From sequence record OR455461.1: DNA of 64,000 nt; one strand, given 5' to 3'. Shown here one piece after another: positions 36,611 through 64,000 of the stretch (the stretch's first letter is position 1; every line of letters begins with the position of its first letter). Below the pieces are notes generated by a model. It was not told where the DNA came from. It did no database searches and was given only the letters and a program-made list of their open reading frames with translations. Position numbers and translations under genes: made by a program.

Positions 36611-37309
36611 TTAAATAAATGCATTTTTAATTTTTGCTTTTCTTTCTATATCTTTGAATTCATCTTCTTCTATAAAATCAAAATTATAATTAGACATTAA
36701 TGCATAAGTTAATGTATTAAAAATAGGACTTTCCTTACAATATTTTTCTCCTAAATTACTTATCAAATATATTATAGAACAAGTGTCTTCATCATTATAA
36801 TTCTTTATATTAATTATTATTCTATCTCGTTTTCTATTTTTAGGTTTACTTAATGTAAATATATAGGTATACTTATCCCTTAAATATTTTATTTCTTTAT
36901 GAATATTTTTTATTAATAATTCAGCTTGTTCTTTTTGTTCTTTATTACTAATCATGAATTCAAAGCTCATATTTAATAATGCTCTTTCATCATTAGGATT
37001 ATAAGGTCTATTGTAATTACTTTTATATAACACTATATTTAAAAAATCTTCATTGTTATAATAATCCATATTATTATAATCATTTAAAGATTTCAGTATA
37101 TCAACTATAGTTTCTTTATTTATAAAAGTTTTTAAATAGTCTATATTCATATCACTTAATCTTACTGATTTATCAAAATTGTTAACCATGTTTGGTATTC
37201 TTAAATAAACTGGGTTATCTTTATATAAATCACATAATTGATTAAAACTTAAAGGAATTACTCTAGGACCTATTAGTTCTTTTTCTTTAATTATTCTAAT
37301 ATCAATCAC
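36611..37309 (-). CDS. Hypothetical protein, variant C-terminal tag (...EFKDIERKAKIKNAFI)
   Basis: Long ORF; tail resembles shared tag with altered spacing. Confidence 0.7.
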   Translation of the reverse strand: MIDIRIIKEKELIGPRVIPLSFNQLCDLYKDNPVYLRIPNMVNNFDKSVRLSDMNIDYLKTFINKETIVDILKSLNDYNNMDYYNNEDFLNIVLYKSNYNRPYNPNDERALLNMSFEFMISNKEQKEQAELLIKNIHKEIKYLRDKYTYIFTLSKPKNRKRDRIIINIKNYNDEDTCSIIYLISNLGEKYCKESPIFNTLTYALMSNYNFDFIEEDEFKDIERKAKIKNAFI

Positions 37310-37322
37310 TTTCTTTCTATTA

Positions 37323-37985
37323 TTATATAAATAATTCTTTAGTTAATATTGAATTATATTCTTTTTTATCTATAATTTCTACAAAATTTCTATGATCCAA
37401 AAGAACTTTTATCTCATTATTGAATTTATTATAATCATCTGCATACACTGCAATATTATCCAAAATGAATTGAATGATCTTAATATAGTTTGAATAAAAT
37501 AAATTCTCTATAAATTCATCTATTTTATTTTTATCTATTAAAAATATTAATGTCAAATCTAGTACATACTCTCTATTGTAATGATCCAGAGAAACAGATT
37601 TTAAAAAATCTAGATCAATTTCATGTATACTATCTATAAATTCTTTTTGGTTTTCAATTAAATCTGTATAGCTTTTTAAACTGAAATACATATTCATTAT
37701 ATATCTATTTTTAGATGTTTTACTAATAAAGAATTCCAATTTACTATTAAAGAAATCCATATGAACTACTTTCATATTTTCTCTATTAAGAATTTCAAAT
37801 ATTTTATTAGCTATACATTTAGATGCTTTTTCCATATTATTAATTTCTTCATCAGAATTAATTAAATAAATTGATCTGTCTTTATTATCATTAAAGTCAT
37901 AGATCTTTTTATTACCGTTGGCACTTTTTTTATGATAAAATATATTTACATTTTCTTTGTTAAAACGATATAAGTAGTTAACCAT
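37323..37985 (-). CDS. Hypothetical protein with C-terminal tag (IDKKEYNSILTKELFI)
   Basis: ORF plus tag. Confidence 0.75.
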   Translation of the reverse strand: MVNYLYRFNKENVNIFYHKKSANGNKKIYDFNDNKDRSIYLINSDEEINNMEKASKCIANKIFEILNRENMKVVHMDFFNSKLEFFISKTSKNRYIMNMYFSLKSYTDLIENQKEFIDSIHEIDLDFLKSVSLDHYNREYVLDLTLIFLIDKNKIDEFIENLFYSNYIKIIQFILDNIAVYADDYNKFNNEIKVLLDHRNFVEIIDKKEYNSILTKELFI

Positions 37986-38061
37986 AAAAGCATCTCATCC
38001 ATTTCTATATTATAATATAATAAAAAGTTACTATATTACTATGGATGAGATGTTATATAAT

Positions 38062-38904
38062 CTATTTAAAACTTTCTTTTACTGCTATCTTCTTATATTC
38101 ATCTTCTTGTACAAAAGTTATTTTTTCTTTATTTTTATTAATAATATCTTTATACGATATAGAATCTAAATTATCTAGTACTTCATCTTTAAAATATAAA
38201 GAATATAATTCGATACCTTTTTTATCTCTAAAGAAATTACAATTTAGTATTTGGTAATTATATTTTCTCATTAAAACTGATAAGAAATTATTTAATTCTT
38301 CTTTATTAGGAATTAAAAAGAATTTCATATTTTTCATTTCTTTATCATTTATACGATCTCTCCTAGATATATTGATATATGAAGTTATTGTTTTTGAAAT
38401 AACTTCATATAATTTATTTGGAGATGAATAATTATTAAAAAGATAAGGATTGATTTGCTTTCTATTTTTACCTTTTACATAATTATCTAATTTAAATTGA
38501 TACTCTTTAAATCTATTTAATATTTTTCTATTTACTTTATTAGATAAAATTAAATAATAACCTTCTTTAGTACCACGATTTTCTATATATAATATATCTA
38601 TTCTATTATCTATATCTTTTTTAACATGTCTAAATAATTTTTTATTAAATAATTGCATTACTTCATTTATATTAAAATAATTGTCACTATATCTTTCATC
38701 TTCAGGTGTAATATCATGTACAAATATTGTACCTACTTGTGGCATAAATTTTCCATCATTTTTATAATTTGAATTATAATTTACAACAGAATTGATAAAG
38801 AATTTATAAAAATTTTCATCTTCATTATTTTTATATAGCATATTGAATTTTATACTCTCATTATTCTTCTTAGTTAGTCTTTTATCTATTTTAATGATTT
38901 CCAT
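38062..38904 (-). CDS. Hypothetical protein with C-terminal tag (VQEDEYKKIAVKESFK)
   Basis: ORF plus tag. Confidence 0.75.
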   Translation of the reverse strand: MEIIKIDKRLTKKNNESIKFNMLYKNNEDENFYKFFINSVVNYNSNYKNDGKFMPQVGTIFVHDITPEDERYSDNYFNINEVMQLFNKKLFRHVKKDIDNRIDILYIENRGTKEGYYLILSNKVNRKILNRFKEYQFKLDNYVKGKNRKQINPYLFNNYSSPNKLYEVISKTITSYINISRRDRINDKEMKNMKFFLIPNKEELNNFLSVLMRKYNYQILNCNFFRDKKGIELYSLYFKDEVLDNLDSISYKDIINKNKEKITFVQEDEYKKIAVKESFK

Positions 38905-38922
38905 AATATCAATTTCCTCTCC

Positions 38923-39462
38923 TTATTTAAATGTCTCTTTTACTATAAATTTCTTGTATTCTTCTTTAGACATATCATCTATATATCCTTTATATTCATA
39001 TAAATTATAATCAGAACTATAGAAAATAACGTCTTCTTCTTCTCCATCATGTTCTGGAAGAAAATCAAAATTGTATGAAAAAACTATATACATATCTTCT
39101 TTAATATTACGTATATAACTATTAAAAATAAATTTATTCATATTTTTACTTTTTAAGAAACTAATATTTTTAGTATATTCTTCTCCATTTTCATGAACGT
39201 GAATTATATTATTTAAATGATTATCTTCAACCCATTCAGGGCTATTCTCAAATGATATGTGTTTAACTACTTCATTATTCATATTTATCAATTTAAAATT
39301 AATCAATACGTTTCCTGGTGTAGTTTCTACATTATGTTTAAATCTATAAGACATATAAGTGTCGATGATTTCCTTATTTGAAATTTCTCCTTCATCTCTT
39401 ATTAAATGAAATATGTCAAAGTGACCGTCTTGTTCTATTCTAAATTTTTTAATGATTTCCAT
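38923..39462 (-). CDS. Hypothetical protein with C-terminal tag (MSKEEYKKFIVKETFK)
   Basis: ORF plus tag. Confidence 0.75.
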   Translation of the reverse strand: MEIIKKFRIEQDGHFDIFHLIRDEGEISNKEIIDTYMSYRFKHNVETTPGNVLINFKLINMNNEVVKHISFENSPEWVEDNHLNNIIHVHENGEEYTKNISFLKSKNMNKFIFNSYIRNIKEDMYIVFSYNFDFLPEHDGEEEDVIFYSSDYNLYEYKGYIDDMSKEEYKKFIVKETFK

Positions 39463-39463
39463 T

Positions 39464-40090
39464 TTATTTAAATCCCCTTTTTATTAATTCATTTTTATAT
39501 TCTTTTTCATTAATTTTATTTATTCTAGTATTTATAATATTCATAAAATTATATAACCTCATATTATTAACTTTATACATTCTTGCATTATTTCCATTAT
39601 CATACCCAATATTATTATTTATAGGTTCGATAATTTCTTTAGAGTTACAATGTGAAATTAATTCAAATACAATATTTCTATTTTCACTTATATCGATAAT
39701 TAATTCTAGGTTTGAAAATTCTAAATCTAAATTATTAATATCCTCTTTAATTAGATTAAATATATTTTTAGAATTTTCTATATCATGGGTCAACCTATAA
39801 TAATCTCCATATACGTCTTCTCTAAATAAACCTATATTACCTTTTGATATTATATGGTATTTAAATTCTATAATATTTCTTAAACTATTCAATTCAATAG
39901 TGATTGTGTTATATTTAATTATTTTTCTCATTCTATCAGTATAAAATTCATTGAAAAATTGTTCAAATAAAATAATATTTAATTCTTGAGAATCAATACT
40001 ATCTTTATTCTGTTTATATGGTAATTTTAGTGTATCAATATTTTTAAAATTTCTTAACAAACCTCTAAAATCCAACATGAAATAATTCAT
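39464..40090 (-). CDS. Hypothetical protein with C-terminal tag (INEKEYKNELIKRGFK)
   Basis: ORF plus tag. Confidence 0.75.
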   Translation of the reverse strand: MNYFMLDFRGLLRNFKNIDTLKLPYKQNKDSIDSQELNIILFEQFFNEFYTDRMRKIIKYNTITIELNSLRNIIEFKYHIISKGNIGLFREDVYGDYYRLTHDIENSKNIFNLIKEDINNLDLEFSNLELIIDISENRNIVFELISHCNSKEIIEPINNNIGYDNGNNARMYKVNNMRLYNFMNIINTRINKINEKEYKNELIKRGFK

Positions 40091-40133
40091 CTATCATTTT
40101 CATCTCCTTCAAATAAAAAAATTAATTATAATA

Positions 40134-40163
40134 GAGATGATACTTTAATTAAAGTATCATCTC
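40134..40163 (-). terminator. Terminator hairpin
   Basis: GAGATGATACTTT/AAAGTATCATCTC stem. Confidence 0.7.
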
Positions 40164-40171
40164 ATATTTTA

Positions 40172-40486
40172 TTAAATTACATTTTTATAGATAGTTTCAG
40201 GTACAAATTCTTCATCATAATCATGAATAGTTAATAATACACCTTCATGAGAATATTCTAAAGTATACATGTCATTTTCATCATTAACATTAACTACTGA
40301 ATAAGAGAAAATACTTGAATCTTGGTCTAATCCTAATTCTTCAATTAAACCTGATTCAGTTCCATAACCTTCATCTACACCTATTTCATTACTTTCTAGT
40401 ACTTCATACTCTCCGTCTACTTCGCCTCTAAGTTGTAAATCTCTTAATACTTCTTCGTTTAATTTTGTCATAATAAATTCCTCCAT
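40172..40486 (-). CDS. Acidic hypothetical protein
   Basis: GGAGG RBS; follows promoter cassette; likely start at the second Met. Confidence 0.7.
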   Translation of the reverse strand: MEEFIMTKLNEEVLRDLQLRGEVDGEYEVLESNEIGVDEGYGTESGLIEELGLDQDSSIFSYSVVNVNDENDMYTLEYSHEGVLLTIHDYDEEFVPETIYKNVI

Positions 40487-40530
40487 TAATTTTATTAGAA
40501 AGATATATGATAATATCTTTCTTCATTATT

Positions 40531-40543
40531 ATAATATATACTT
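40531..40543 (-). promoter_or_regulatory. Early-type promoter AAGTATATATTAT (other copies at 41772, 46351, 50162, 50856, 51843, 53873, 61054, 62788)
   Basis: Perfect 13-mer, always sense to the next gene and just upstream of it. Confidence 0.7.
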
Positions 40544-40548
40544 AATCT

Positions 40549-40854
40549 TTATTTCGTTTCAAACTTTTCAATGCCTTTTTCTTCAATAACTACATCTGCA
40601 TTTAATACTTGTAAACGTTTACCATCTACATTAATAACAATGTAACTACCGCCTGCTTCATCACTATATTTAGTTCTGATTTTCTTTCCTTCATATTGAT
40701 GTAATACTTTACCATCTTTACTATATATAGTTACTTTTCTTTCTAGACCTGATGTATCTGATTTATGATCTTTAGTAGCATCATCAAACCATGTACAACC
40801 TGCTAACACTGTTGTTAATAATAAAACTCCAAATAACATTAAAATCTTTTTCAT
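40549..40854 (-). CDS. Phage lipoprotein (DUF5052-like)
   Basis: Lipobox VLAGC; GLERKVTIYSKDGK...YEGK pattern. Confidence 0.7.
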   Translation of the reverse strand: MKKILMLFGVLLLTTVLAGCTWFDDATKDHKSDTSGLERKVTIYSKDGKVLHQYEGKKIRTKYSDEAGGSYIVINVDGKRLQVLNADVVIEEKGIEKFETK

Positions 40855-40871
40855 AATTTATTTTCTCCATT

Positions 40872-41357
40872 CTATTCTAGATAATATATTCCTTCACTAA
40901 TATCAATTCCATGCTTTTTTAAATCAGAAGATTTGACTAAATTATTTTTACATACTAATTGTCCATCAAATCTATTTGTAATAATTCCTTTATTATTTAC
41001 TTTTTTAGCAATTGCATGATCTGAAATTCTAATGAATTTAAAATTATTATTTTTTACATATATTGATATAGACCTTTTATTACCGGAAAAATTAGTTATA
41101 TAACCACTTCTAACTAATTCATTTGTTAAACTTCCTTTTACATTACCTAATTCTAAAATACTTTCATTTGTTTTAGAATTAATAAATTTCTTCTTAATAT
41201 CTTCCCCTAACATCACATGGTCATTAATCTCTTTTACTATAGGCATCGTATTAAAGTTGTTCTTCTGTGAGTAGTCTAGAAGAAAGAATAATAAATCTTC
41301 AATTCCTTCTTCTGTGACTGGAAAGACCTCCTTATTTTTATTCTCTAAATACTTCAT
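40872..41357 (-). CDS. Hypothetical protein (IRISDH motif)
   Basis: ORF with RBS. Confidence 0.7.
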   Translation of the reverse strand: MKYLENKNKEVFPVTEEGIEDLLFFLLDYSQKNNFNTMPIVKEINDHVMLGEDIKKKFINSKTNESILELGNVKGSLTNELVRSGYITNFSGNKRSISIYVKNNNFKFIRISDHAIAKKVNNKGIITNRFDGQLVCKNNLVKSSDLKKHGIDISEGIYYLE

Positions 41358-41384
41358 CCGTTTAATCTCCTTTAATTATATTAT

Positions 41385-41717
41385 TTATACAAAACTATTT
41401 AATTCTTTCATATGATAACTTCCTAACTCTAATTTAAGATGGAAATTCTCTATCATTTTATAATTTAAACCATGTTCTTCTAATAATTCTACATTGATAG
41501 TTTCTTCATCAATTTCTAATATTTCTTTTAATGTAAATATATCTGAAGATACTACTGTTAGAGAATCTGCTAAATTATCAAGATCTTTTTCTCTAGAATC
41601 ATCTATATTATAGACGAAACTTTCTTCCATTAAATGCTTGCAATTAGATATAACAATTAAGTCTCCTACAATTTTATCATAAATTCTATCTATAACTTTT
41701 TTACTATCTTTTAACAT
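41385..41717 (-). CDS. Hypothetical protein
   Basis: ORF with AGGAG RBS. Confidence 0.7.
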   Translation of the reverse strand: MLKDSKKVIDRIYDKIVGDLIVISNCKHLMEESFVYNIDDSREKDLDNLADSLTVVSSDIFTLKEILEIDEETINVELLEEHGLNYKMIENFHLKLELGSYHMKELNSFV

Positions 41718-41788
41718 TATCCATTCACTCCTATTATTTTAATTGATATGAAGTTTATCAACTTCATTTATATAATATATACTTATAA

Positions 41789-42259
41789 TTAATTTAAATA
41801 GATATTTTTATTGTAACTATCCTTACCTAATTTATTACTTATATTAATATCAAATATTAAATCTCCAGTTACAGATTTATCTTTACTATTAATACTTTTT
41901 ACTAACATCATTGTAATTGAATTATTGTAAGTTAAAGTTTCTATAGTTGTATATATTTTAATATCTTTACTTATATCATCTTTTTTAATATTCCTTACTA
42001 ATTTTAAATCTCCATTGTCTATTAAAGTACCCACTTCTGTATCTAATAGTTCAATAATGCAATCAATAAAATCTTCTGCTTTATGAAACAGATTGTGTTT
42101 TTCATTAAGAATATAAGTTCTATTTGGTTTAACTTCAGTTTCTTTATTAATTGTATTTAATGATTTGTATATGAAATTATTAATATAATTTTGTGTAACT
42201 TCAACTGGTAATTTTAAATTATTATTTATTAATTTGTCTATATTCTTTTTATTCTTCAT
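41789..42259 (-). CDS. Hypothetical protein
   Basis: ORF coupled to upstream gene. Confidence 0.65.
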   Translation of the reverse strand: MKNKKNIDKLINNNLKLPVEVTQNYINNFIYKSLNTINKETEVKPNRTYILNEKHNLFHKAEDFIDCIIELLDTEVGTLIDNGDLKLVRNIKKDDISKDIKIYTTIETLTYNNSITMMLVKSINSKDKSVTGDLIFDINISNKLGKDSYNKNIYLN

Positions 42260-42711: not shown

Positions 42712-42723
42712 ATTGAGATCTCC

Positions 42724-43188
42724 TTAAATTTCATTAATAATATTAGCTAAATATTCATTGTGATTTAATTCTATACGTCTAGATTCATCTACATTATTTT
42801 CTATATCATCTATAAAGCTATCGAAAAGATTATCAAGTAATTCAATAAATTTCTCATCAGAACCTCTTTCTTTATATCTATTTAGATAAATTTCTTTGTC
42901 AGATCGTTTAGGATAAACCACTACAAATTCTAAACCACTATCATTTAATCCTTGAATAACTTCTTTATGAGTAGATACAAAGATATAATCCATTACATTC
43001 TTAAAGTATAAGTCTCTAATGTAAGTTAAATAATTCTTTGGAAATCTAGGATCTCTAACTTTTTCTCCATCTTTTACTAACCATGAGAAGCTAGTTGAAT
43101 CTGAATCGGATGTTCTTAAGAATGTGATATTATTTTTAATATAAGATTTACCTGTACCTGGAAATGCTGCGATTATTTTAGTATTCAT
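42724..43188 (-). CDS. P-loop nucleotide kinase-like protein
   Basis: IIAAFPGTGKS Walker A. Confidence 0.75.
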   Translation of the reverse strand: MNTKIIAAFPGTGKSYIKNNITFLRTSDSDSTSFSWLVKDGEKVRDPRFPKNYLTYIRDLYFKNVMDYIFVSTHKEVIQGLNDSGLEFVVVYPKRSDKEIYLNRYKERGSDEKFIELLDNLFDSFIDDIENNVDESRRIELNHNEYLANIINEI

Positions 43189-43799
43189 TTTTTAATTTCT
43201 CCTTTAATATTTAAGTTAAAGTAATCCTGAAATTCTTTTATATTATTATCAATTTCTTTATATTCTCTTGATTCTAATTTACTACTTTCATATTTGAGAA
43301 ATTCTCCATAAGTAAGTAATCTATTAGTATCAATACTGTTCTTCCAATGTTTTCTTTTCTTTCTTTCTTCAAGTTTTACTATTTTAGTAGCATCTATAAA
43401 TGATTCTCCTAGTAAAATTCCTGTTAAGTTTTTTATATTATAATACTCTATATACCAGTTTTTTTCATTTTTAAAATTATTAAAAGCTTCTTTAAAAATC
43501 TCATTATTCCCATTTAATTCAATATACCATAGAGAATAATATTTACCCTTAATTTTATATGATTGATTTAAAGCTCTATATTCTTTCATAATATTATTAT
43601 TAAAGAATATTATAGAGATAATTATCATTGGTATAAATATTAATAAAGATAATAATGCTAATTTAGTATTAATTGACGATATAAAAATAAATAATGTTAT
43701 CAGTACTGAAAATAAAATTGCATTAAATAAAAAAGGAAATATTGTTGAATTTCCATTTTTATAGATGCACCAATCAAATAGGTTTATTTTATTTTTCAT
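43185..43799 (-). CDS. Membrane protein, tandem paralogue 1 of 3
   Basis: NLFDW, two TM segments, NRLLTY.EFLKY. Confidence 0.75.
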   Translation of the reverse strand: MKNKINLFDWCIYKNGNSTIFPFLFNAILFSVLITLFIFISSINTKLALLSLLIFIPMIIISIIFFNNNIMKEYRALNQSYKIKGKYYSLWYIELNGNNEIFKEAFNNFKNEKNWYIEYYNIKNLTGILLGESFIDATKIVKLEERKKRKHWKNSIDTNRLLTYGEFLKYESSKLESREYKEIDNNIKEFQDYFNLNIKGEIKK

Positions 43800-43806
43800 T
43801 TTATTA

Positions 43807-44424
43807 TCATTCCCCTTTAGTGTTTAAATTATAGTAATCTTGAAATTCTTTTATTTCTCGTTCCATATCATTTAATTTTTCAATTTTAAGTTTATTCTTT
43901 TTATATTTAAGGAATTCTCTATAAGTGAGTAATCTATTAGTATCAATATTGTTCTTCCAATGTTCTCTATTTTCTCTGACTGCATATTCCACTATTTTAG
44001 TATCTTTTATAAAGAATCCTTCTAGTAAAATTCCTGATAAGTTTTTTATATTATGATCCTCTATATACCAGTTTTTTTCATTTTTAAAATTATTAAAAGC
44101 TTCTTTAAATAACTCATTATTTTCATTTAAACTAATATACCATAGAGAATAATATTTACCTTTGATTTTATATGATTGATTTAAAGCTGTATATTCTTCC
44201 GAATTTTCATCATTTATACACTTAATCATTTTACGTGATATTATAAATATTATTAAAGATATTAAAGGTGAAAATAGAATTACACTTATATTAAAACTAA
44301 ATATAGAAATTATAGGTATAACTATTGCTAAAGATGTTAATAAAATATCTAAGTATTCGACTATTTTGAAAATCTCATTTCTTGTATATAAATTCCAATC
44401 AAATCTATTTACTGTATTTTTCAT
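43807..44424 (-). CDS. Membrane protein, tandem paralogue 2 of 3
   Basis: C-terminal half nearly identical to paralogue 1. Confidence 0.75.
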   Translation of the reverse strand: MKNTVNRFDWNLYTRNEIFKIVEYLDILLTSLAIVIPIISIFSFNISVILFSPLISLIIFIISRKMIKCINDENSEEYTALNQSYKIKGKYYSLWYISLNENNELFKEAFNNFKNEKNWYIEDHNIKNLSGILLEGFFIKDTKIVEYAVRENREHWKNNIDTNRLLTYREFLKYKKNKLKIEKLNDMEREIKEFQDYYNLNTKGE

Positions 44425-44974
44425 TTAGTGTATCACCTCTTATTTTTAAATTAAGATGTTCTTTAAATTCTTTTATATACTTATCCAACTTAATATTTTC
44501 TTCTAATTTTAACATATTCTTTCTATATTTAATAAATTCTCTATAAGTTAGTAATCTATTTTTACCTGTATTATTTTTCCAGTTATATCTATCCAATTCC
44601 CTTAAATTAAATTTACTAATATTGAAAATAATTTTATTCAATTCGTGAAGTTCTTTTTCAGTTTCAATAACTCCTGTCATGTTAAAAAACCATCTAGAGT
44701 AATAATTTCCTTTTATTTCATAAGAAAAATTTATAAATTTGTATTCTGACATAATCTCATCATTAAAATATTTCAAGTATATAAATGTAGAAATTATTAA
44801 TATAGGGATAAAAATTGATAAAGATAATAAAAATAGATTGATACTATATAGTAAAGATAAAAAGGATATTAAAATTGACAAAATAAATATTGATGTGAAA
44901 CATCTGAAGGGGATTATTGCATCTTTACCTTTTCTATAAATATGCCAATCAAATAGATTCACTGTTTTTCTCAT
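44405..44974 (-). CDS. Membrane protein, tandem paralogue 3 of 3 (start revised to MRKTVNLFDW)
   Basis: Alignment with paralogues; AGGTGAG RBS before 44974. Confidence 0.7.
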   Translation of the reverse strand: MRKTVNLFDWHIYRKGKDAIIPFRCFTSIFILSILISFLSLLYSINLFLLSLSIFIPILIISTFIYLKYFNDEIMSEYKFINFSYEIKGNYYSRWFFNMTGVIETEKELHELNKIIFNISKFNLRELDRYNWKNNTGKNRLLTYREFIKYRKNMLKLEENIKLDKYIKEFKEHLNLKIRGDTLNEKYSK

Positions 44975-44981
44975 TTTATTA

Positions 44982-45176
44982 TCACTCACCTTTCTTTTTT
45001 CTATAAAATGTTCTTCCATGCATTGTTTCGTAGTATTTAATAATATTAGTAATGCATCCCCTACTCACATTAAATCTTTTTGCAAATTGATCTAATGTTT
45101 TCCAATTATTATGAACTATATATTGCATTATTTCTTTTCTTTCTTTAGGTGTGAATTTATAATTTCTTCCAGACAT
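44982..45176 (-). CDS. Small helix-turn-helix DNA-binding protein
   Basis: TLDQFAKRFNVSRGCITNII. Confidence 0.7.
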   Translation of the reverse strand: MSGRNYKFTPKERKEIMQYIVHNNWKTLDQFAKRFNVSRGCITNIIKYYETMHGRTFYRKKKGE

Positions 45177-45191
45177 AATTAAACTTCTCCT

Positions 45192-45698: not shown

Positions 45699-45725
45699 TT
45701 CAACTCCTGATTAAGTAATTAAATA

Positions 45726-45758
45726 ATCCCAATGAGAATAATACATCTCATTGGGATA
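45726..45758 (-). terminator. Terminator hairpin
   Basis: ATCCCAATGAGA/TCTCATTGGGAT stem. Confidence 0.75.
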
Positions 45759-45764
45759 TTATAT

Positions 45765-46295: not shown

Positions 46296-46361
46296 GATAA
46301 AAACTCCTTTAATTTTTTTTGAGTAATATCAATTAATATTACTCATTTTTATAATATATAT

Positions 46362-47033
46362 TTAAATTTGAGATAATAGAAAGTATATAGTTAATAATCC
46401 CATTATAATATGAAAATAGAATAATTTTTTATTTATTCTTTCTTCATATACTTTAAATATTATGCTATCTAAATACTTTTCTAAGTCCTTATTATCTTTA
46501 AAATTTTCTATAAGTTCTTCAAATTTAATTATATTTCCATCTTTATCTTTCATTTCTAAATTACTAAATACATATTTCTTATTTTCAAAACTTAAATTTC
46601 CATCACTTTCTTTTATTAATTCATATTGAAATAATGTATGTCTTATCATAGGTATTAGACTCATTATAATTATAATGAATATACCCATATAAGTAATATC
46701 AGTTATCTCATAGTTTGCATTCACTATATATAAAGAGTAAAATATTATTGTATAAATAATTACATCATACCCTTTCAAAATTTTTCTTATAATTATATTT
46801 ATTATAAGTATTATAAAGAAATAATATACGATATATGATTCAACTACTTCATGGTTAAATACAAGTGAAACTATTGGAAATACTAAGCATGATAATGTTA
46901 ATACAGTTGGTAAAAACTTCTTATCTAATTTTTCTTTATATGCTGCTATAAGAATTTTAAATAAAGAAAAATAAGTAATGTATACCATTATTACAGTTAA
47001 AATTGTTACTATGATTTCTTCCACTTTATACAC
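46362..47033 (-). CDS. Multi-pass membrane protein
   Basis: Five to six hydrophobic segments. Confidence 0.7.
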   Translation of the reverse strand: MYKVEEIIVTILTVIMVYITYFSLFKILIAAYKEKLDKKFLPTVLTLSCLVFPIVSLVFNHEVVESYIVYYFFIILIINIIIRKILKGYDVIIYTIIFYSLYIVNANYEITDITYMGIFIIIIMSLIPMIRHTLFQYELIKESDGNLSFENKKYVFSNLEMKDKDGNIIKFEELIENFKDNKDLEKYLDSIIFKVYEERINKKLFYFHIIMGLLTIYFLLSQI

Positions 47034-47062
47034 TTCTTTCTTGTAAAAAAATAATTAATGAA

Positions 47063-53818: not shown

Positions 53819-53890
53819 TTTAATAATTTAATATAGGTAATGAGCGTTATAATATTTGCTCATTACCTATTTATAATATATACTTATTTC

Positions 53891-54952: not shown

Positions 54953-54966
54953 TTCTTTCTTTTATA

Positions 54967-56187: not shown

Positions 56188-56254
56188 TTCTATAAACCCT
56201 CCATATTTATAAAGTATAATAAGAATGGATAATCATAAAGATTATCCATTAAAA

Positions 56255-56455
56255 TTACTTATTCACTTTGATTGCATAATCATAAAGTATCAAAGCAGTA
56301 TTAAAAGCTATATTATCTAATTTATTAATTCCCCTTTTAATTCTACCAATTTTAGCTCTACTTATTCCAGTACATTTTTCAATTTCATAATTACTAATCT
56401 CTTTATTATTTAATAGTTTTTCTATCTCATATTTAACTTCTTCAGCTTTATTCAC
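56255..56455 (-). CDS. Small XRE-like HTH regulator
   Basis: ISNYEIEKCTGISRAKIGRIKRG. Confidence 0.7.
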   Translation of the reverse strand: MNKAEEVKYEIEKLLNNKEISNYEIEKCTGISRAKIGRIKRGINKLDNIAFNTALILYDYAIKVNK

Positions 56456-58120
56456 TAGCTTTAATACCTACATTTTTTGATTTAGGGTTATTTAGTAAAT
56501 AAACAGCTATTTGTGAGTCTTTATTAAGCGAGTAAGTTCTATTAAATAATCCATCATTATATGAAATTAATTGATTTACTGGATCTTGGACTTTTAACTG
56601 TTCGTATTGTTCTTCTGAAAATAGTGCTATGATGTTTAAAGTGTCACCATCATACGTTTATCTTAATCTATATAAATATTATCATATAGACGAGACTATA
56701 TCATTACCATTTAAGGTAGAATATATTTAGTCGTTGAACAAATTATATTAATTTGATGCTGATTAATTTAATAATCTTCTCAGCAATTAATATTCTTTTC
56801 TATAAATCTCTCAATTTAAAGCGACTATTATTTAATCGGCCATTTGTATTAACTTCATAGAGATTTTTCTATAAAGATTAGACTATATCAAACTCATATT
56901 AGTGAGTGAATTTATTTAGTCGTTGAACAATCATCTTGATTGATGCTGATTAATTTAATAATCTTCTCAGCAATTAAAATTCTTTTGACATTATATTACT
57001 ATAATGAAAGGCTACCTTTATAACCCATACCAGCAAGTATATTATTACTAATACCTACTACTGATGATTCTATATCTTGAATTATATCTTTAATTTTCAA
57101 TATTTGAACAGAGCTTTCACTAATTGAGGGATTTCTATTTAAAATAACTCTCATTCCATTTTCAGTTTTATCAACTAGTTCTCTCATATATTTATATACT
57201 TTAGGATTAAATGTATCTAATGCTCTGTCTAATATTTCTTCACCTTTAGCTAAAGGAATATTTTCTGTTACATACATTAAATTTGCTAAGATAGGTTTAT
57301 ATACTTCTAAGAAGATAGTGTAATTTAATCTGATTTCATTTAATTTAAGGTCAGGTGCTGGAACAATTACTGAACGTGCAGAGAAACCAACACGACTACC
57401 CATTAGTAATTTACGAATAGTTCCACCTTTACCTTTAATATTCTCATTAATTACACGATCACTAATATTAATACTATCATTCTGAATTTTACTTAATAGA
57501 TTTAATTTTTGTAACTCCACTGAATCATCTGTATAATGTCTATCAAGTTCTTTAATACTATTACTATGTGCAATTAATAAATTATAATCTTTATTAATTT
57601 CAGAATGTCTAAAAGTTTTAGTAGCTTTGTTAACTGTAGCAGGTCTTAATTTAGGACTAAATACAGTTACATAATTTTGGAATAGTAAATCAGATAAATA
57701 CCATTGTACTACTCTATTGTAATCTTTAGTTTTACGTTTATCACGTTTAACTTCTTCTTTAAGAATTTTTAAGAAATTCTTTCTAAATTCAATTAAACCA
57801 ATATAAGAGTTATGATCATCTTCAGGTTCAATTACATTACCATTCTCATCAATAGGTTTTTCAGAACTAATAATTTCTTGGAATCTTTTATTACCAATTA
57901 ATTTTTTAACACGTTCATATCCTAATGGATTTAATATATAATTATTACCTAAATCTACAATAGCTTCATTAGTAATATTATCTGCTTCTGAATCAGGACC
58001 GAAGATTTTTTCACTGAAAATACCATCTTCAGTGAAATCTCCTTTTTTATCTATTGATTCATGATTAGTTACAACTGGAACATTTTCTAAATCCTTTTTC
58101 TTGAGTAAAAATCTAACCAT
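56448..58120 (-). CDS. rpoC: Non-virion RNA polymerase beta' subunit, N-terminal part, 3 exons: join(58120..57023, 56840..56835, 56654..56448), 436 aa
   Basis: DGIFSEKIFG, MGSRVGFSARSVI, LNRNPS. Splicing gives LAGMG|AD|YDGDTLNII, the catalytic DxDGD motif. Close to AR9 nvRNAP beta'N from recall. Confidence 0.93.
56655..56834 (-). mobile_element. Group I intron rpoC-I2, 180 nt, no ORF
   Basis: P1 CGAU/GUCG; P10 AUAAUA/UAUGAU; P3 AGAAUAU/AUAUUCU; conserved core; terminal G 56655. Confidence 0.92.
56841..57022 (-). mobile_element. Group I intron rpoC-I1, 182 nt, no ORF
   Basis: P1 GGGU/GCCU; P2 CAUUAUA-GUAA-UAUAAUG; P3 GAAUUU/AAAUUC; conserved core; terminal G 56841. Confidence 0.92.
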
Positions 58121-58123
58121 AAC

Positions 58124-59746
58124 TTAATCTTCTCCCTCTTCTACAATTTCTTTAATGTCCATAACAACTTCTTGATCATCATTTTCTTTCTCTAATTTAT
58201 CAATATTTTCAATATCTTCAATTTCTTTGATATTAGGTTTATTTTCAAAATAGAATGAACCATTTTCACCAGGATCTTTAACTTCACAGAAAGGTGTTAA
58301 AGTACGAGTAATACCTGGATTATTTGATGAAGTAGCAATCAAATCAATTCTACCGAAATAAGTGTTATTGATATTGATTGTTCTAATAGATGGTTTACTA
58401 GTGTCTACAGCTGATTGTGGACCTGCTTTAGTCATTTTAAGAATTCTAGTAAATAAGTCAATTGTATTAACTGCATTAGAATAACGTATACCGTCAGAAG
58501 TTCCAATAGTCTTCAATAGATAATCTCTAGGTACTCCTGAGAATAATCCTTTAAGATTTTTAATTGTACGTTTTTTATCTGAGAAGTTAATCATACGATA
58601 TGAAGTATCAGAGTTTTTTCTATTCAGTGGATAAGTTAAATATTCTAATACTCTTAAACGTTTATTAGCTAAATCTGTATTATCTAATAAGTTAAGATTA
58701 TCAAAGTTCTTAAACATGTATTTAACCACATGATAAGTTGATTCTTTATCTTCTGATTCTAATCGTGATATAGCTTGAGTACGACTATCTAATATACGAT
58801 CAAATGAAAGTATCATTGAATTCGCTTTATCTATTTTAGTGTCAATATTAGTTGAACCACTGAAGATAGAACCTAAAGCTTTTAACCAGAATTCTCTATC
58901 GTATATTTTATCTAATCCCGCTCTCATTCCTTTGAATAAATCTTTAATACAAAGGATCATAGAATTTCTATAACGATCATCAACGTCTAACCATTCTTTT
59001 TCAACTTTTAAAGAAAGTTTATTATTAATTTTAAAGTAATAGTAATTATCTTCTTTTTCATCATTAATATCTATTACTTTACAATGGTCTTTAATTTCTA
59101 AGAATTCAAATGTTTCATCAAATCCCATTTTTGCAACAAAGAACATAAATGCTGGAACACTCTTATTTTTATTGAACACTTCTAGATATAGAGTTCTTCC
59201 TCTTTGGACATTATTCATCTTATTATCGTCATCCATAATAGTATCTTTTTTAGAACCATTGACTGATAGTGGTTGCAATAAGTTTTTCATTACTACAGTA
59301 CTAGCTTTTGGTTTATAAAATTCAGCATCTGCTAATTGTAGAATTGGGAAAAATTTGTTATTATTAATATAGTAGTATTGACCTTCAATAAGTTCAGGGA
59401 AATCTAATTTGTGTGTATATTCTTCTTTATTACCTTCTGAATCTTCAAATTCTACTGTAATTTGAACTTCTAGTAATTTAGATTCCTCAACATTAATTTT
59501 TCTGTAATCTTTAGATTTAAGTTGTTTATCTGTCATTTGATTAAATTCATAAACCTGACTTGGTGAAACGACTTTACAATCTAAGAATTTAATTCCTTTA
59601 ATAAATTCTACTGATCTATAAATGTCTGAAATGATTTTTTCTAAACTTTCATTTTGTCTGAAATAGATTACGTCTTCGTTAAATGGTTCTTTTTTGCTAA
59701 TGTCTTCGTTGATGTTCTTTGTAACTTTACTTAAGTATTTACTCAA
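58124..59746 (-). CDS. rpoB: Non-virion RNA polymerase beta subunit, N-terminal part (540 aa)
   Basis: FPELIEGQYYYINNNKFFPILQL, LANKRLRVLEYL, FGRIDLIATSSNNPGITRTLTPF; adjacent to beta'. Confidence 0.85.
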   Translation of the reverse strand: MSKYLSKVTKNINEDISKKEPFNEDVIYFRQNESLEKIISDIYRSVEFIKGIKFLDCKVVSPSQVYEFNQMTDKQLKSKDYRKINVEESKLLEVQITVEFEDSEGNKEEYTHKLDFPELIEGQYYYINNNKFFPILQLADAEFYKPKASTVVMKNLLQPLSVNGSKKDTIMDDDNKMNNVQRGRTLYLEVFNKNKSVPAFMFFVAKMGFDETFEFLEIKDHCKVIDINDEKEDNYYYFKINNKLSLKVEKEWLDVDDRYRNSMILCIKDLFKGMRAGLDKIYDREFWLKALGSIFSGSTNIDTKIDKANSMILSFDRILDSRTQAISRLESEDKESTYHVVKYMFKNFDNLNLLDNTDLANKRLRVLEYLTYPLNRKNSDTSYRMINFSDKKRTIKNLKGLFSGVPRDYLLKTIGTSDGIRYSNAVNTIDLFTRILKMTKAGPQSAVDTSKPSIRTININNTYFGRIDLIATSSNNPGITRTLTPFCEVKDPGENGSFYFENKPNIKEIEDIENIDKLEKENDDQEVVMDIKEIVEEGED

Positions 59747-59834
59747 TTATCCGACACTCTCCCTCTTGGTAATAAAAACTTTATAAGATATGAGTTATTT
59801 CTGGTTTTTATTTTTTTACAAAATGAAAACTCAT

Positions 59835-59846
59835 AACAATATTATA
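59835..59846 (+). promoter_or_regulatory. AACA-N6-TA promoter upstream of HU-like gene
   Basis: AACAATATTATA. Confidence 0.5.
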
Positions 59847-59907
59847 TCATAAAACTTAGAAAAATGCTAGGAAAATAATACTATTTTTCTAAAAATTTTA
59901 AAAATAA

Positions 59908-60240
59908 ATGAAAGAAAGGAATCTAAAAATGAATAGACAAATTCAAGATCAAAAACATTTCTTCCGTGAATGGTCTAAACGAACTGGTTTATCTCAAAGA
60001 GAATTAGTCGATGCTTATTCAGAAATGATCGATATTTTAGTTGAATCAGCTAATGATTCAGATCAAACTAAAACTATTATTCCTGAAATTGGTGTTTTAG
60101 AAGTTAAACCTGAAGATATGCGTAAACGTAGAAATCCAAGAACTAATCAAATTGTAGTTACTGAACCTACACGTAAAGCACACATTCGTTTATATCCTAG
60201 ACTTAAAAATAGATTTAAACCTGAAGAACTAGAAAAATAA
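59908..60240 (+). CDS. hup: HU/IHF-like DNA-binding protein
   Basis: RTGLSQRE..., IPEIGVLEVK..RKRRNPRTNQIV pattern of HU family; start may be the second Met. Confidence 0.85.
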   Translation: MKERNLKMNRQIQDQKHFFREWSKRTGLSQRELVDAYSEMIDILVESANDSDQTKTIIPEIGVLEVKPEDMRKRRNPRTNQIVVTEPTRKAHIRLYPRLKNRFKPEELEK

Positions 60241-60253
60241 AAATAATTCAAAA

Positions 60254-60283
60254 GCCATAATATACTTATTTGTATATTATGGC
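60254..60283. terminator. Bidirectional terminator
   Basis: GCCATAATATAC/GTATATTATGGC stem. Confidence 0.8.
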
Positions 60284-60290
60284 AATTTTA

Positions 60291-60569
60291 TTATTCATTT
60301 TCATTAATGTCTTCTTTAGTTTCTTTTCTTTTAATAGTTAAATTAAGTACTTTTCTGAAAAATTTAATTTTAAGATTTAATAAGAAATTACTATCTGATT
60401 TAATCTTAACATCAAACTTCTGCTCTTTATCTTCTTCAGTTTCAGGTAAAGTAACAAATTCAAAGTCTACTCTTTCTAAGTCTTCTCTAGATAATAATTC
60501 TTTCTTTTGACTTTCATTAAGTTTTAACCCTAATCTTTTTTCTAATTTCTTTTGATTTCTTTTATTCAT
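60291..60569 (-). CDS. Hypothetical protein
   Basis: ORF with GGAG RBS. Confidence 0.65.
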   Translation of the reverse strand: MNKRNQKKLEKRLGLKLNESQKKELLSREDLERVDFEFVTLPETEEDKEQKFDVKIKSDSNFLLNLKIKFFRKVLNLTIKRKETKEDINENE

Positions 60570-60598
60570 ATTAATAAGTCATCTCCATATTATAATTA

Positions 60599-60982
60599 TT
60601 AATCTTTATAGTCTGGTTTAGCTGGAATCCACATCTTAGGATTATAATTAATTTCATATTGATATTTGCTAACATTCTTAGTTGTAACGTCTTCAACAGT
60701 ATATGAAACATTATCAGATAGACCAATGATGTGTTTTTGATATTTACCATTTTCATTTTCTACAACTATTTCCAACTGATTATCATCTTTATCTGCTTTG
60801 ATAGACATACGTCCAGACATCTGAAAAATAATATCATTCTTAATAGCATTTATAACAGTTACTTTTCTAACTACATTAAAATTATCTGACTCTTCAGACA
60901 TATTCTGACTAACCTTATCTGCTTGAGAACACCCTGTTAATAATAAAACGAATAATAATGGTAGTACTAAAAATTTCTTCAT
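60599..60982 (-). CDS. Phage lipoprotein
   Basis: Lipobox LLTGC; ADKVSQN..EESDNFNVVRKVTVIN..YEINYNPKMWIP family common in Gram-positive phages. Confidence 0.8.
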   Translation of the reverse strand: MKKFLVLPLLFVLLLTGCSQADKVSQNMSEESDNFNVVRKVTVINAIKNDIIFQMSGRMSIKADKDDNQLEIVVENENGKYQKHIIGLSDNVSYTVEDVTTKNVSKYQYEINYNPKMWIPAKPDYKD

Positions 60983-61064
60983 GATTGTTTTCTCCTTTGA
61001 TTGTCTTAATATATTAGAGGTAATGACAAATTGTATGTCATTACCTCATTTTTATAATATATAT

Positions 61065-61286
61065 TTAAATAATATCTTCCTCATAATTAGGAATAATTAA
61101 TTCTTGTTCTAATAAATTATCTAACTTACTTTTTTCTAATACAAATCCATTACCATCTTTATCTGAATATAAAAGTAATTCAGATTCACCATCAATAAAG
61201 TTTTTTAAACCTCTACGGTGTAAAAAGAATTTTCTTTCGTTCTTCTTATATTCAAATGAGAATGGTATTTTTCCTTCTTCCATCAT
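61065..61286 (-). CDS. Hypothetical protein
   Basis: ORF coupled to upstream gene. Confidence 0.6.
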   Translation of the reverse strand: MMEEGKIPFSFEYKKNERKFFLHRRGLKNFIDGESELLLYSDKDGNGFVLEKSKLDNLLEQELIIPNYEEDII

Positions 61287-61576
61287 GCTACAACATCTCC
61301 ATCTTTAGTTTCAACATTCTTTGAATTTAATTCAATACTAAAATTCTTAATATGATTCAAGTGATTTAATTTTAATTTACTTCTAAAACTTTCCTTATCA
61401 ATACTTTCGATATTATAAGTATTCAATATCATTTGCATTGTAGTAAAGTTTTCTGAATCATATATTTCTAATAACGTAATCTCCAATTTATTAATAGCTT
61501 CTTCAAACGTATCAAACGTAAATGATTCAACTATTCTTCTATTGAATTTTAATTTAAATCCATATACTCTTTTCAT
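61283..61576 (-). CDS. Hypothetical protein
   Basis: AGGAG RBS. Confidence 0.65.
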   Translation of the reverse strand: MKRVYGFKLKFNRRIVESFTFDTFEEAINKLEITLLEIYDSENFTTMQMILNTYNIESIDKESFRSKLKLNHLNHIKNFSIELNSKNVETKDGDVVA

Positions 61577-61596
61577 TTAAATTCTCTCCTTTCTAT

Positions 61597-62247
61597 TTAA
61601 CTAAATAAAGAATTTATAAATATAGATCTATATTCTTTAATTGTAATTTCTTTATTATAATTGAAGAATATATTTTTAGACTGCTTTAAAGTTAAAAAGA
61701 ATTCAGCTAATGTTAATGCTTTAAGATATTGCTTTTCATTGTCTCTATTTTGTTTAAATAAATTAATGAATATATCTTCAATTCCTATTTCTTTAAAATT
61801 GTCTATATAGAATTCTTCTTTAATATCCTTCTCTACATATGGTACTTTAGTTATTGTAAAATATGAATTATTAGTTTTAACTAAATTATTTGAATCTAAT
61901 AAATCATCTATTTCTGGTTCAGTAAGACTATTAATTTCTTTAAAATCTCTGAAATTATTTACTTTTTTAATATTCTCTTTTATTAAATTTAATGTCTGAT
62001 GATTTACTATTTTACTATAAAAATTCATAGTAGTTCTTTCATTTGAGAATATATTTTCCTCCAATATTAAAGAATAACTAGCATTATTAATCATTAAAGC
62101 ATTACTATTTTCTGTAATATCCAATTGCTTTTCAATTTGTTCCATTATATCTTTATCGTAATCTATAAGTAGAACAATTGTGTTTAAATTCTTTTTATAC
62201 GTATTCCTAGATCTTTTTTGAAAATTAATTAAGTACATTATAACCAA
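61597..62247 (-). CDS. Hypothetical protein with C-terminal tag (ITIKEYRSIFINSLFS)
   Basis: ORF plus tag. Confidence 0.72.
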   Translation of the reverse strand: MVIMYLINFQKRSRNTYKKNLNTIVLLIDYDKDIMEQIEKQLDITENSNALMINNASYSLILEENIFSNERTTMNFYSKIVNHQTLNLIKENIKKVNNFRDFKEINSLTEPEIDDLLDSNNLVKTNNSYFTITKVPYVEKDIKEEFYIDNFKEIGIEDIFINLFKQNRDNEKQYLKALTLAEFFLTLKQSKNIFFNYNKEITIKEYRSIFINSLFS

Positions 62248-62310
62248 CTATATCACCACACTTATATATTAATGAATTTATAATAATTACACGTTAGTTT
62301 CATTCATTAA

Positions 62311-62715
62311 TTATTTAAATGAATTCGTTATAATTAAATTTTTAAATTGCTTTTCAGTTAATATATCTTTTAAATATCGATGGATAGTTTCTTTAAAATC
62401 ATATATTATATAATTATCATTTTCTTTTATTAAAGCACATAAATTATCACTACCATTATTATATTTCTTCAATATTTTATTTATAGTATAGTAGTCAATC
62501 TTATTATTTTCAAATATTATTGATGATAAAGCTGGTTTAATAATCACTTCATAAAAATTACTAAATGATTTTGTATAAGATTCTACATCATCTTTATCAT
62601 CAATGTGACTGAAAAATATTTGTCTTATTACAGGATAAGTATATGATCTCAATACATTATACTTAATTATTTGACTTGACAATTCATCATAATCAAATTT
62701 ATTTAATTTTTTCAT
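62311..62715 (-). CDS. Hypothetical protein with C-terminal tag (LTEKQFKNLIITNSFK); paralogue of 63227
   Basis: Shared YE.II.P..S.IIFE and AL.K....Y.IYD blocks. Confidence 0.72.
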   Translation of the reverse strand: MKKLNKFDYDELSSQIIKYNVLRSYTYPVIRQIFFSHIDDKDDVESYTKSFSNFYEVIIKPALSSIIFENNKIDYYTINKILKKYNNGSDNLCALIKENDNYIIYDFKETIHRYLKDILTEKQFKNLIITNSFK

Positions 62716-62811
62716 TATCTAACACCTCCTCATATAATAAATATATTTAAGACAACGTATATATTTAGTATACATTTTCTCATTTTAATAATATATATTT
62801 AAATCATATTT

Positions 62812-63213
62812 TTATTTAAATGTATTTTTTATTTTATTATTCATATATTCTTTTCTTGTGACTTCAGTATAATAATTTTCATCAGATATATCAAAATCCA
62901 TTTCAGATACAGTTCTAATAAATATATGATGTATATCATCTAAATCTTTCTTTTTACTTCTTTTTATTTTTACTTCAAGTCCTTGATAACTATTATATTT
63001 TATCTTAATATTTAATAATACAGCTAAACCCTTTCTTATTTTACCTATAGAAATAGTATTATAAAAATCAAAATGAGTTAGTATATCCATTATAGATAAA
63101 TTTTCATCTTCACTAAAATAAATATTATATCTATTAAAATCTGATAAGTTTACACGTTCTTCTATATTAAGATTTTTTACTATCCCTATAGGTGTTAATT
63201 TATAATATTTCAT
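62812..63213 (-). CDS. Hypothetical protein with C-terminal tag (VTRKEYMNNKIKNTFK)
   Basis: ORF plus tag. Confidence 0.75.
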   Translation of the reverse strand: MKYYKLTPIGIVKNLNIEERVNLSDFNRYNIYFSEDENLSIMDILTHFDFYNTISIGKIRKGLAVLLNIKIKYNSYQGLEVKIKRSKKKDLDDIHHIFIRTVSEMDFDISDENYYTEVTRKEYMNNKIKNTFK

Positions 63214-63226
63214 ATCAATTCCTTAT

Positions 63227-63658
63227 TTATATTATTGATTTATAGAAATCTAAATCTTCAGATAATAAATTTTTTATTGCTTTTGTTACATACGTTTGTT
63301 TATCGTATATTTTATACTCACCATCAATTTTAACTAAAGCAAATAAATCACTAGCAAAATCTGGTTCTAGTAAGATGGAAACCATCTTTTTGTTTAAAAC
63401 ACTTTCTTCATAATGATCTTCGAAGATAATGTCCGATATTGAAGGTAGTATAATTTCTTCATAATAATCTTTTATGTCATCCATTTCATTATAAGCTTCT
63501 TCTGTTCCAATATCATAATCGTCACTAAAAAATAATTCTCTTAGAACTAAATAACTATTTGACTTTAATTCTTTAGGAACACTCACCATATTTTCTTGTG
63601 TAATTTTTATTGAATCTTTTAGACTGTCTGAATCAAATAAATTGAAAAACTCATCCAT
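63227..63658 (-). CDS. Hypothetical protein, paralogue of 62311
   Basis: AGGAG RBS; shared blocks; tag degenerate. Confidence 0.7.
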   Translation of the reverse strand: MDEFFNLFDSDSLKDSIKITQENMVSVPKELKSNSYLVLRELFFSDDYDIGTEEAYNEMDDIKDYYEEIILPSISDIIFEDHYEESVLNKKMVSILLEPDFASDLFALVKIDGEYKIYDKQTYVTKAIKNLLSEDLDFYKSII

Positions 63659-63675
63659 TTTATATCTACTCCTTT

Positions 63676-64000
63676 TTATTTAAAATTTTCTTTAATTTTA
63701 TTATTTCTATATTCTTTTTCAGTTATTTTTATATAATCTTCATTAATTATTAATCCCATTTTATTAATACCTTCTGCATTGAATGTGAATTTATCGTTAT
63801 ACCCATGATTTCTTATATTATCATATATTTCATTCAAAGTTTCTTCACCAGTTAAATGCATACTATCTTCCCATATTTCATAACCTTTAAGATCAATCCA
63901 GTAATTCACGTACGTGTTTTCTTCTTCATCTCTTAAAAAATTAGTTTCTATTTTTATAGGAAAATCTTTAATTAAATCAATTAATATAATTTCTTCATCT
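63676..64000 (-). CDS. 5'-truncated hypothetical protein with C-terminal tag (ITEKEYRNNKIKENFK)
   Basis: Frame stays open past the GTG at 63909 to the window edge (DEEIILIDLIKDFP...ENTYVNYWIDL). Confidence 0.7.
   Translation of the reverse strand, partial: DEEIILIDLIKDFPIKIETNFLRDEEENTYVNYWIDLKGYEIWEDSMHLTGEETLNEIYDNIRNHGYNDKFTFNAEGINKMGLIINEDYIKITEKEYRNNKIKENFK

Follow-up and report, generated by a model that had tools for sequence, protein, structure and literature searches.

Why should about one in eight of the proteins of a large Staphylococcus phage, most of them without detectable similarity to one another over the rest of their length, end in the same 20 or so residues? The question is raised by a 64,000-nucleotide (nt) stretch of jumbo phage AH12, here called the window (positions 62001-126000 of the 264,661 bp record OR455461.1, matched at 100% identity), whose minus strand carries parts of two gene arrays coding for this common C-terminal tail. 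AH12 belongs to the S6/MarsHill/Machias group of uracil-DNA phages with two multisubunit RNA polymerases, and its genome has a G+C content of ~24%. All ten tail genes of the window (10/10) are annotated in the record only as hypothetical proteins. A first-pass annotation made from the letters of the window alone had pointed out the tail on about ten early proteins and had suggested an amphipathic helix acting as a modular address. As described below, the feature is real, large, clade-specific and unannotated, and it presents a well-defined puzzle rather than a mechanism.

A strictly C-terminal tail and its distribution

The ten C-termini quoted in the first-pass annotation all directly precede the stop codons of minus-strand open reading frames (ORFs) of the window (10/10). 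A regular expression for the tail matches the C-termini of eight ORFs of the window and, with all six frames considered, nothing inside an ORF. When the whole AH12 genome was scanned piecewise, beyond the window, the pattern [ILVM][KRT]xxFx was found at the end of 25 of 285 long ORFs, against 0.74 expected from its internal frequency, a C-terminal enrichment of ~30-fold. With a tail profile scoring at least 12 bits, which defines a tagged gene at the genome level among non-overlapping ORFs of at least 90 amino acids (aa), the tail is carried by 30 of 242 AH12 ORFs, or ~12% of the proteome. The set of about ten first proposed is therefore too small: there are ~30 such proteins per genome, and the window cuts through two arrays. 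Beyond the window, three consecutive operons made up of tagged genes only occupy AH12 positions 194-10974, and other tagged genes occur singly or in small groups at 15.8, 19-22, 31.5, 126.2, 131-134 and 163 kb. In size the tagged proteins extend from 92 to 616 aa, with the end motif found on both the smallest and the largest of them.

In the loci of S6, SA1, MarsHill, LY01 and DC4 that were compared with those of AH12, the arrays recur with their tails. A profile scan of genome and relatives of the kind that the first-pass annotation had suggested, here with the final residue left out of the profile, gathers 75 unique proteins from the loci of these six phages, and exactly one residue follows the Phe in 75/75 of them, with no internal match in 163,940 residues. 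The earlier statement that Phe is always penultimate and that the tail is strictly C-terminal thus holds for the enlarged set. Numbered from the C-terminus, the columns of 25 tails show Phe(-2) in 25/25, Val/Ile(-6) in 24/25, Lys/Arg(-5) and a hydrophobic residue at -11 each in 23/25, Asn/Gly/Thr/Ser at -3 in 22/25, Lys/Arg(-10) in 20/25, Lys(-13) in 19/25 and Glu(-12) in 18/25. Most bodies are acidic (median net charge -8), and the tails have a net charge of ~+1. The spaced variant reported at 36611 is also present, with its extra residues lying within the helix and its Phe-X end retained; this variant tail is kept in the orthologues of S6, SA1, MarsHill and LY01, and a terminator-like hairpin lies just downstream of the gene.

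Conservation acts on the protein and not on the DNA, because codon usage within the tail is varied (GTA, GTT, GTC and GTG at Val(-6); AAA, AAG and AGA at Lys/Arg(-5)), the stop codons TAA, TGA and TAG are all used, and the 30 nt past the stop are unconserved and contain the ribosome-binding site of the next gene at varying distance. Identity over 30 orthologue pairs is 56% in the last 16 residues and 39% in the rest of the protein, the tail being the higher in 26/30, and several bodies fall to 26-33% identity between orthologues with the tail motif retained. Invariant alignment columns make up 39% of the last 20 residues versus 26% of the middle (p = 9e-4). The tagged genes as a group diverge fast, with a median identity to S6 of 35% versus 60% for their untagged neighbours (p = 0.003). 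These codon and conservation data bear out the first-pass view of the tail as a real unit and show it to be under selection at the protein level.

The tagged set is specific to the clade of Staphylococcus jumbo phages, of which the phage collection contains ten genomes. A tblastn search of all phage records with the tail matches only these ten. In Listeria phage LPJP1, the closest outgroup in the collection, the tail is found at 0/341 ORF ends (best score 9.7 bits), and in the first 100 kb of Bacillus phage AR9, a segment that includes 17 annotated early promoters, there is no tail. The bodies show the same restriction, in that an LPJP1 homologue is found for 0/30 tagged AH12 proteins versus 91/212 untagged ORFs (p = 3e-7), or 40/136 untagged ORFs when these are matched for size. 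Searched at E 1e-3 against 1.84 billion protein representatives, the tail profile recovers only the clusters of 5/10 query proteins; because so short a motif has little power in that database, absence elsewhere is weak evidence. Word-seeded protein searches with the tagged proteins return near-identical relatives only, so that the alignments were not deepened. The literature searched on these phages and on jumbo phages generally does not mention the tail, which is not known to have been described before. As a separate observation, two LPJP1 ORFs (31237-31605 and 35930-36991) share a different common C-terminal ending, ..INK[IL]KSI, which suggests that other jumbo phages may have terminal signatures of their own.

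The tagged genes lie in operons that appear to be early, as the first-pass annotation had supposed, the label being given because of promoter similarity. The early promoters of AR9 are 13-nt elements annotated in its record, and the 17 that were extracted share AA[AG]TATATATTAT; the MarsHill preprint describes the same promoter core upstream of 29 genes. A scoring matrix built from the 17 AR9 promoters finds 41 sites in AH12, mostly 45-78 nt ahead of start codons, including nine on the window minus strand between 40.5 and 62.8 kb, each 45-73 nt ahead of a start codon. Such sites directly head the window gene at 62311 and the tagged operons at AH12 4180, 8607, 10993 and 22268, and 27/32 tagged genes checked (all but five) lie at most 4 kb downstream of a same-strand site. 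The five-gene tagged run at 36611-40090 is bounded by a terminator-like hairpin on each side and is without a perfect 13-mer of its own. Searching for the promoter octamer with one mismatch allowed gave pure noise, where the full 13-mer matrix worked, and a sigma-70 scan was uninformative in the AT-rich DNA of the window.

The tail as a possible docking module

Database comparison gives no lead to the function of the tagged proteins. Neither PHROGs nor Pfam gives anything above cut-offs for 20 tagged proteins, ten of them from the window, the Pfam matches of the 92-aa tagged protein are solely to coiled-coil families and all below cut-off, and the tail profile finds only chance-level internal matches among Protein Data Bank (PDB) sequences. 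The reading tentatively preferred here, with a chance somewhat below even of being correct, is that the tail is a shared docking or anchoring module carried by diversified early effectors. It is favoured because the tail is the most constrained part of fast-evolving proteins and stands at a fixed distance from the C-terminus. A fixed distance to the free C-terminus is typical of motifs that are read together with the carboxylate and is unlike ordinary domain ends, which are ragged; the occurrence of exactly one residue after the Phe in every one of the 75 proteins therefore points to recognition of the terminus itself.

The proposed module would consist of ~20 residues: a short strand (hydrophobic-x-E-hydrophobic-T) leads into a 12-residue helix (-14 to -3) that is capped by Asn or Gly at -3, after which come the invariant Phe(-2) and a single final residue, most often Lys. 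Its strand, together with one helix face, would anchor it to the body; a constant surface would be made up of Val/Ile(-6), Lys/Arg(-5), Phe(-2) and the free carboxylate; and one common partner, either a phage protein of the clade or a protein conserved in the Staphylococcaceae, would recognise that surface. Many diversified, mostly acidic bodies would in this way be linked to one hub. That the tail is a new C-terminal addressing system, in which a single phage or host receptor reads ..[VI][KR]xxF[K]-COOH and recruits, localises or regulates ~30 early effectors, is a possibility to be held more lightly. The idea of a modular address put forward in the first-pass annotation thus survives at the strength of a hypothesis.

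Several known systems resemble the proposed docking module in part. The ankyrin-repeat/PRANC proteins of poxviruses likewise form arrays of many fast-evolving paralogues, in which variable bodies are combined with a short conserved C-terminal element that docks to one hub. However, the F-box-like fold of PRANC is recognisable and has a Pfam model, and its target is a ubiquitin-ligase adaptor of eukaryotes, whereas the host of AH12 is bacterial, and no match to the PRANC/F-box model above cut-off was found in the 20 tagged proteins scanned. The likeness to common-tail adaptor families of large eukaryotic viruses is one of logic, not of sequence or fold. Closer in their geometry are the HbYX motif of proteasomal ATPases, the XB tail by which SspB binds ClpX, and the HslU tail, which are strictly terminal, with the penultimate residue aromatic or hydrophobic and its spacing to the carboxylate fixed; these have only 3-8 conserved residues and a hydrophobic residue at -3, unlike the ~20 residues and the Asn/Gly/Thr/Ser at -3 of the AH12 tail. 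The HbYX motif itself was rejected on this ground, since the penultimate aromatic is Phe in 25/25 tails but -3 is Asn, Gly, Thr or Ser in 22/25.

Two other candidates fare no better. The sliding-clamp motif (QL[SD]LF type) does not fit the last five-residue window of Val/Ile, Lys, Glu/Asn, Asn/Gly and Phe, which lacks Gln and in which the Phe is not preceded by a hydrophobic residue, and the SAP/HeH helix-extended-helix was set aside because the chain stops after the first helix in the structural models and there is no Pfam match. As to membrane anchors of the MinD/FtsA type, which are terminal helices with an unbroken hydrophobic face and no structure in solution, the hydrophobic residues at -11, -8, -7, -6 and -2 do not fall on one face of a helical wheel drawn by hand, the net charge of the tail is ~+1, and the tail is predicted by AlphaFold to be structured as strand plus helix.

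One fold or many, and the lesser alternatives

The principal rival to a docking module is purely structural. It holds that all the tagged proteins are remote paralogues of one fold, with a core made of an N-terminal hairpin and the C-terminal strand-helix and with a hypervariable insert between them, and that the tail is conserved because it closes this fold and not because it is bound. This explanation is judged less likely than docking, and several findings speak for it. Tagged genes of similar size stand side by side in tandem arrays, and some families can be merged by transitive profile searches: jackhmmer applied to 103 unique tail-stripped proteins of the six phages gives 30 components, ~24 of them represented in AH12, in which four left-array genes fall together, as do window genes 62812 and 63676 with AH12 126172. 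For most of the proteins such comparisons find nothing. Within AH12, blastp and jackhmmer join the bodies in two small groups only; hhalign of orthologue profiles with the tails removed gives a probability below 1% in all 28 pairs; with the tails restored its top alignments are exactly the last 17-23 residues; and N-terminal profile comparisons between tagged families yield no match. The first-pass description of the bodies as otherwise unrelated is thus right for most of them, which show no detectable similarity even when profile is compared with profile, and is too strong for 62812 and 63676, which are demonstrable paralogues, and for 62311, which has an untagged paralogue. The remote-paralogue comparison that it had suggested likewise merges a few families and leaves most apart.

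The two ends of the proteins nevertheless hint at more than the middles do. An N-terminal strand motif, xY[YF]K, is found in 14/30 tagged versus 17/212 untagged ORFs (p = 6e-7), an enrichment to be read with the reservation that the regular expression was written after the data had been seen. AlphaFold2 models were built from shallow alignments (6 and 11 orthologues) for the 179-aa protein at 38923 (predicted local distance difference test, pLDDT, 76; predicted template-modelling score, pTM, 0.68) and the 150-aa protein at 42259 (pLDDT 75, pTM 0.72). Both models start with a hairpin-helix-hairpin and end with a strand-helix whose helix spans -14 to -3: strand 161-164 and helix 166-177 followed by Phe178-Lys179 in the first, strand 133-135 and helix 137-148 followed by Phe149-Val150 in the second. 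In the 150-aa model the confidence is highest at the two ends. Foldseek finds nothing in the PDB with E <0.03 or a template-modelling (TM) score >0.27 for either model, and in BFVD the 150-aa model matches only its own orthologues and, weakly, one 202-aa protein (E 0.01, TM 0.35). The alike N-terminal and strand-helix ends of the models, together with the N-terminal motif, make common descent of the tagged proteins plausible. For most of them the probable origin is tandem duplication followed by very fast divergence, although the evidence only hints at a single expansion.

Some of these observations weigh against a docking function. The tail has a pLDDT of 69-93 in the models, and the program DSSP assigns a strand before the tail helix in both, so that a portion of the modelled tail is bonded within a sheet rather than forming a free peptide; the free amphipathic helix of the first-pass annotation is accordingly weakened. 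From these moderate-confidence models on shallow alignments, the tail may be an ordinary buried core element, and the enrichment of the N-terminal motif and the common architecture of the ends may reflect a single diverged fold in which the tail is plain homology. Asn or Gly at -3 followed by Phe fits the general helix-capping rule, and a Schellman-type cap formed by Asn/Gly(-3) and Phe(-2) could account for the invariant Phe without any partner. Against a single fold, in turn, stand the empty tail-stripped and N-terminal profile comparisons, the near-absence of structural matches beyond orthologues in BFVD, the wide range of protein sizes with solely coiled-coil similarities (below cut-off) at its 92-aa lower end, and the post hoc nature of the N-terminal motif. 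A structural role alone would also leave the constant one-residue end after the Phe unexplained.

Lineage-specific expansions of this general kind are known from other giant viral genomes. The multigene families (MGFs) of African swine fever virus (ASFV) and the ~35-copy Zn-ribbon expansion in Bacillus phage G (PMC7824862) are likewise tandem sets of fast-diverging accessory genes; these families are recognisable over their full length, whereas in the AH12 set only the last ~20 residues and, weakly, the first ~10 are detectable.

An improbable alternative is that the tail is a degron or timing signal, with a host or phage protease or adaptor reading Phe-X-COOH and clearing the early proteins after use. 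Many bacterial protease recognition signals are C-terminal, and both the strictly terminal position of the motif and the location of the genes in early operons would suit such a role. But the tail is unlike the known ssrA-type ends of Staphylococcus, and its ~20 residues, predicted to be structured, are unlike short unstructured degrons.

A packaging signal, by which the proteins would be loaded into the capsid and injected along with the DNA, is more improbable again. The precedent is the capsid targeting sequence of phage T4 (on IPI-III and Alt), also a short common terminal peptide that serves as an address on dissimilar phage proteins, and a set of many small proteins with a terminal tag in common is how such a signal would be expected to appear. 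In T4 the signal stands at the N-terminus of virion proteins, from which the prohead protease removes it, whereas the AH12 motif is at the extreme C-terminus in all 75 proteins, unlike a T4-type signal, and belongs to genes of early operons. Packaging of proteins is known in related phages, the virion RNA polymerase being one example (PMC10638138; bioRxiv 10.1101/2020.12.14.422802). But the tagged genes are headed by early promoters and are not grouped with late structural genes, and none of the 15 proteins in a shallow list of DC4 virion proteins from liquid chromatography-mass spectrometry was placed in a tagged array: no member of the arrays that could be assigned locus tags is listed, and the remaining hypothetical entries of the list were located by gene order alone or left unchecked. 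One small protein of that list that was checked directly, UFVDC4_00019, is encoded by an opposite-strand gene outside the arrays.

It is hardly credible that a signal in the nucleic acid (a promoter, a terminator or an element for translational coupling), or simply the codon bias of AT-rich DNA, accounts for the conservation: Lys, Asn, Phe, Ile and Tyr codons are indeed common in so AT-rich a genome, but such a reading is contradicted by the codon variety at -6 and -5, the use of all three stops, the unconserved downstream 30 nt, the variable spacing to the next start codon, the absence of the motif from internal positions and from other frames, and the lack of the motif in the low-G+C relative LPJP1.

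Neighbouring features and wider meaning

The tagged genes of the window and the elements associated with them are collected in the table. The gene at 63676 had first been given a length of 77 aa, but it runs off the end of the window and the record gives the full protein. The untagged gene at 63227-63658 has relatives in S6 and SA1 that carry the tail, and the tail has thus been lost from it by decay.

Tagged genes, early-promoter sites and hairpins of the window (window coordinates)
Feature	Position	Strand	Remarks
Tagged gene, 232 aa	36611..37309	-	Spaced tail variant, ~four extra helix residues, ends Phe-X
Tagged gene, 220 aa	37323..37985	-	24-29 bits; orthologues 66-75% identical, tail kept
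Tagged gene, 280 aa	38062..38904	-	Orthologue bodies 28-34% identical, tail kept
Tagged gene, 179 aa	38923..39462	-	AlphaFold2 model
Tagged gene, 208 aa	39464..40090	-	First of the hairpin-bounded five-gene tagged run
Tagged gene, 150 aa	42259..42711	-	AlphaFold2 model
Tagged gene, 213-216 aa	61597..62247	-	Tail variant, end ..SLFS
Tagged gene, 134 aa	62311..62715	-	73 nt downstream of AR9-type early promoter 13-mer
Tagged gene, 133 aa	62812..63213	-	Body paralogous to 63676 and AH12 126172
Tagged gene cut by window end	63676..64000	-	Full gene 157 aa, AH12 125676-126149
Untagged paralogue of 62311	63227..63658	-	Body similarity E 1e-5
AR9-type early promoter 13-mer	62788..62800	-	Heads 62311 and 61597
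AR9-type early promoter 13-mer	46351..46363	-	Nearest upstream of the unit containing 42259
AR9-type early promoter 13-mer	40531..40543	-	Nearest upstream of the five-gene tagged run; one gene and a hairpin between
Terminator-like hairpin	40134..40163	-	Upstream of the five-gene tagged run
Terminator-like hairpin	36561..36596	-	Closes the five-gene tagged run

Several neighbouring genes are of interest in their own right. Three tandem paralogues of ~204 aa each (43185-45019, minus strand) share a common C-terminal ending of their own, different from the tail, and have a single best match in S6 and a single one in SA1, which suggests that the gene was triplicated in the lineage of AH12. A minus-strand gene (35794-36420), flanked by hairpins and situated between tail-fibre module and tagged operon, codes for a protein with a very acidic, Glu/Asp/Ser-rich C-terminal half; its last ~12 residues are near-identical in S6 and SA1, and the remainder is 58-67% identical. 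The 127-aa Phage_VG64 protein (60599-60982, minus strand; Pfam, E 4.5e-48) has its own early-promoter 13-mer 72 nt upstream and is 98% identical to its S6 counterpart and 85% to that of SA1, exceeding the RNA polymerase beta subunit (84%); this may reflect recent transfer or unusually strong constraint.

The homologue of the non-virion RNA polymerase beta-prime subunit (56451-58120, minus strand) is in two pieces with one interruption and matches 434/436 residues of the continuous S6 protein. At the interruption no Rfam intron family was found at gathering score, and Rfam and tRNA scans of the whole window were both empty; in LY01 two adjoining ORFs rather than one are annotated at this locus. 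On the plus strand an ORF of 2876 aa (19539-28169) lies upstream of a 998-aa tail-fibre homologue. Its length is very variable among relatives, reaching 11,034 nt in SA1, and in MarsHill the corresponding ORF bears the annotation of a putative tail fibre that has a galactose-binding-like domain.

The uracil-DNA jumbo phages of this group are potential agents for S. aureus therapy, yet most of their early genes are uncharacterised. The tail signature gathers dozens of orphan genes into one functional class, its ~20-residue profile provides a simple handle by which tagged genes can be found and annotated, and the 13-mer sites are a ready map of the early transcription units of AH12. If the tail only belongs to the core of a fold, the tagged genes would still represent an unusually large and fast lineage-specific expansion worth annotating. 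If it is a docking module, the signature predicts one partner protein central to the early programme, and naming that hub would explain many unknown genes at once. Such a hub would provide an example in a bacterial virus of the poxvirus-type strategy of adaptors with a common tail, and an addressing system of this kind, if true, would be the bacterial-virus counterpart of the hub-docking tails of the large DNA viruses of eukaryotes.

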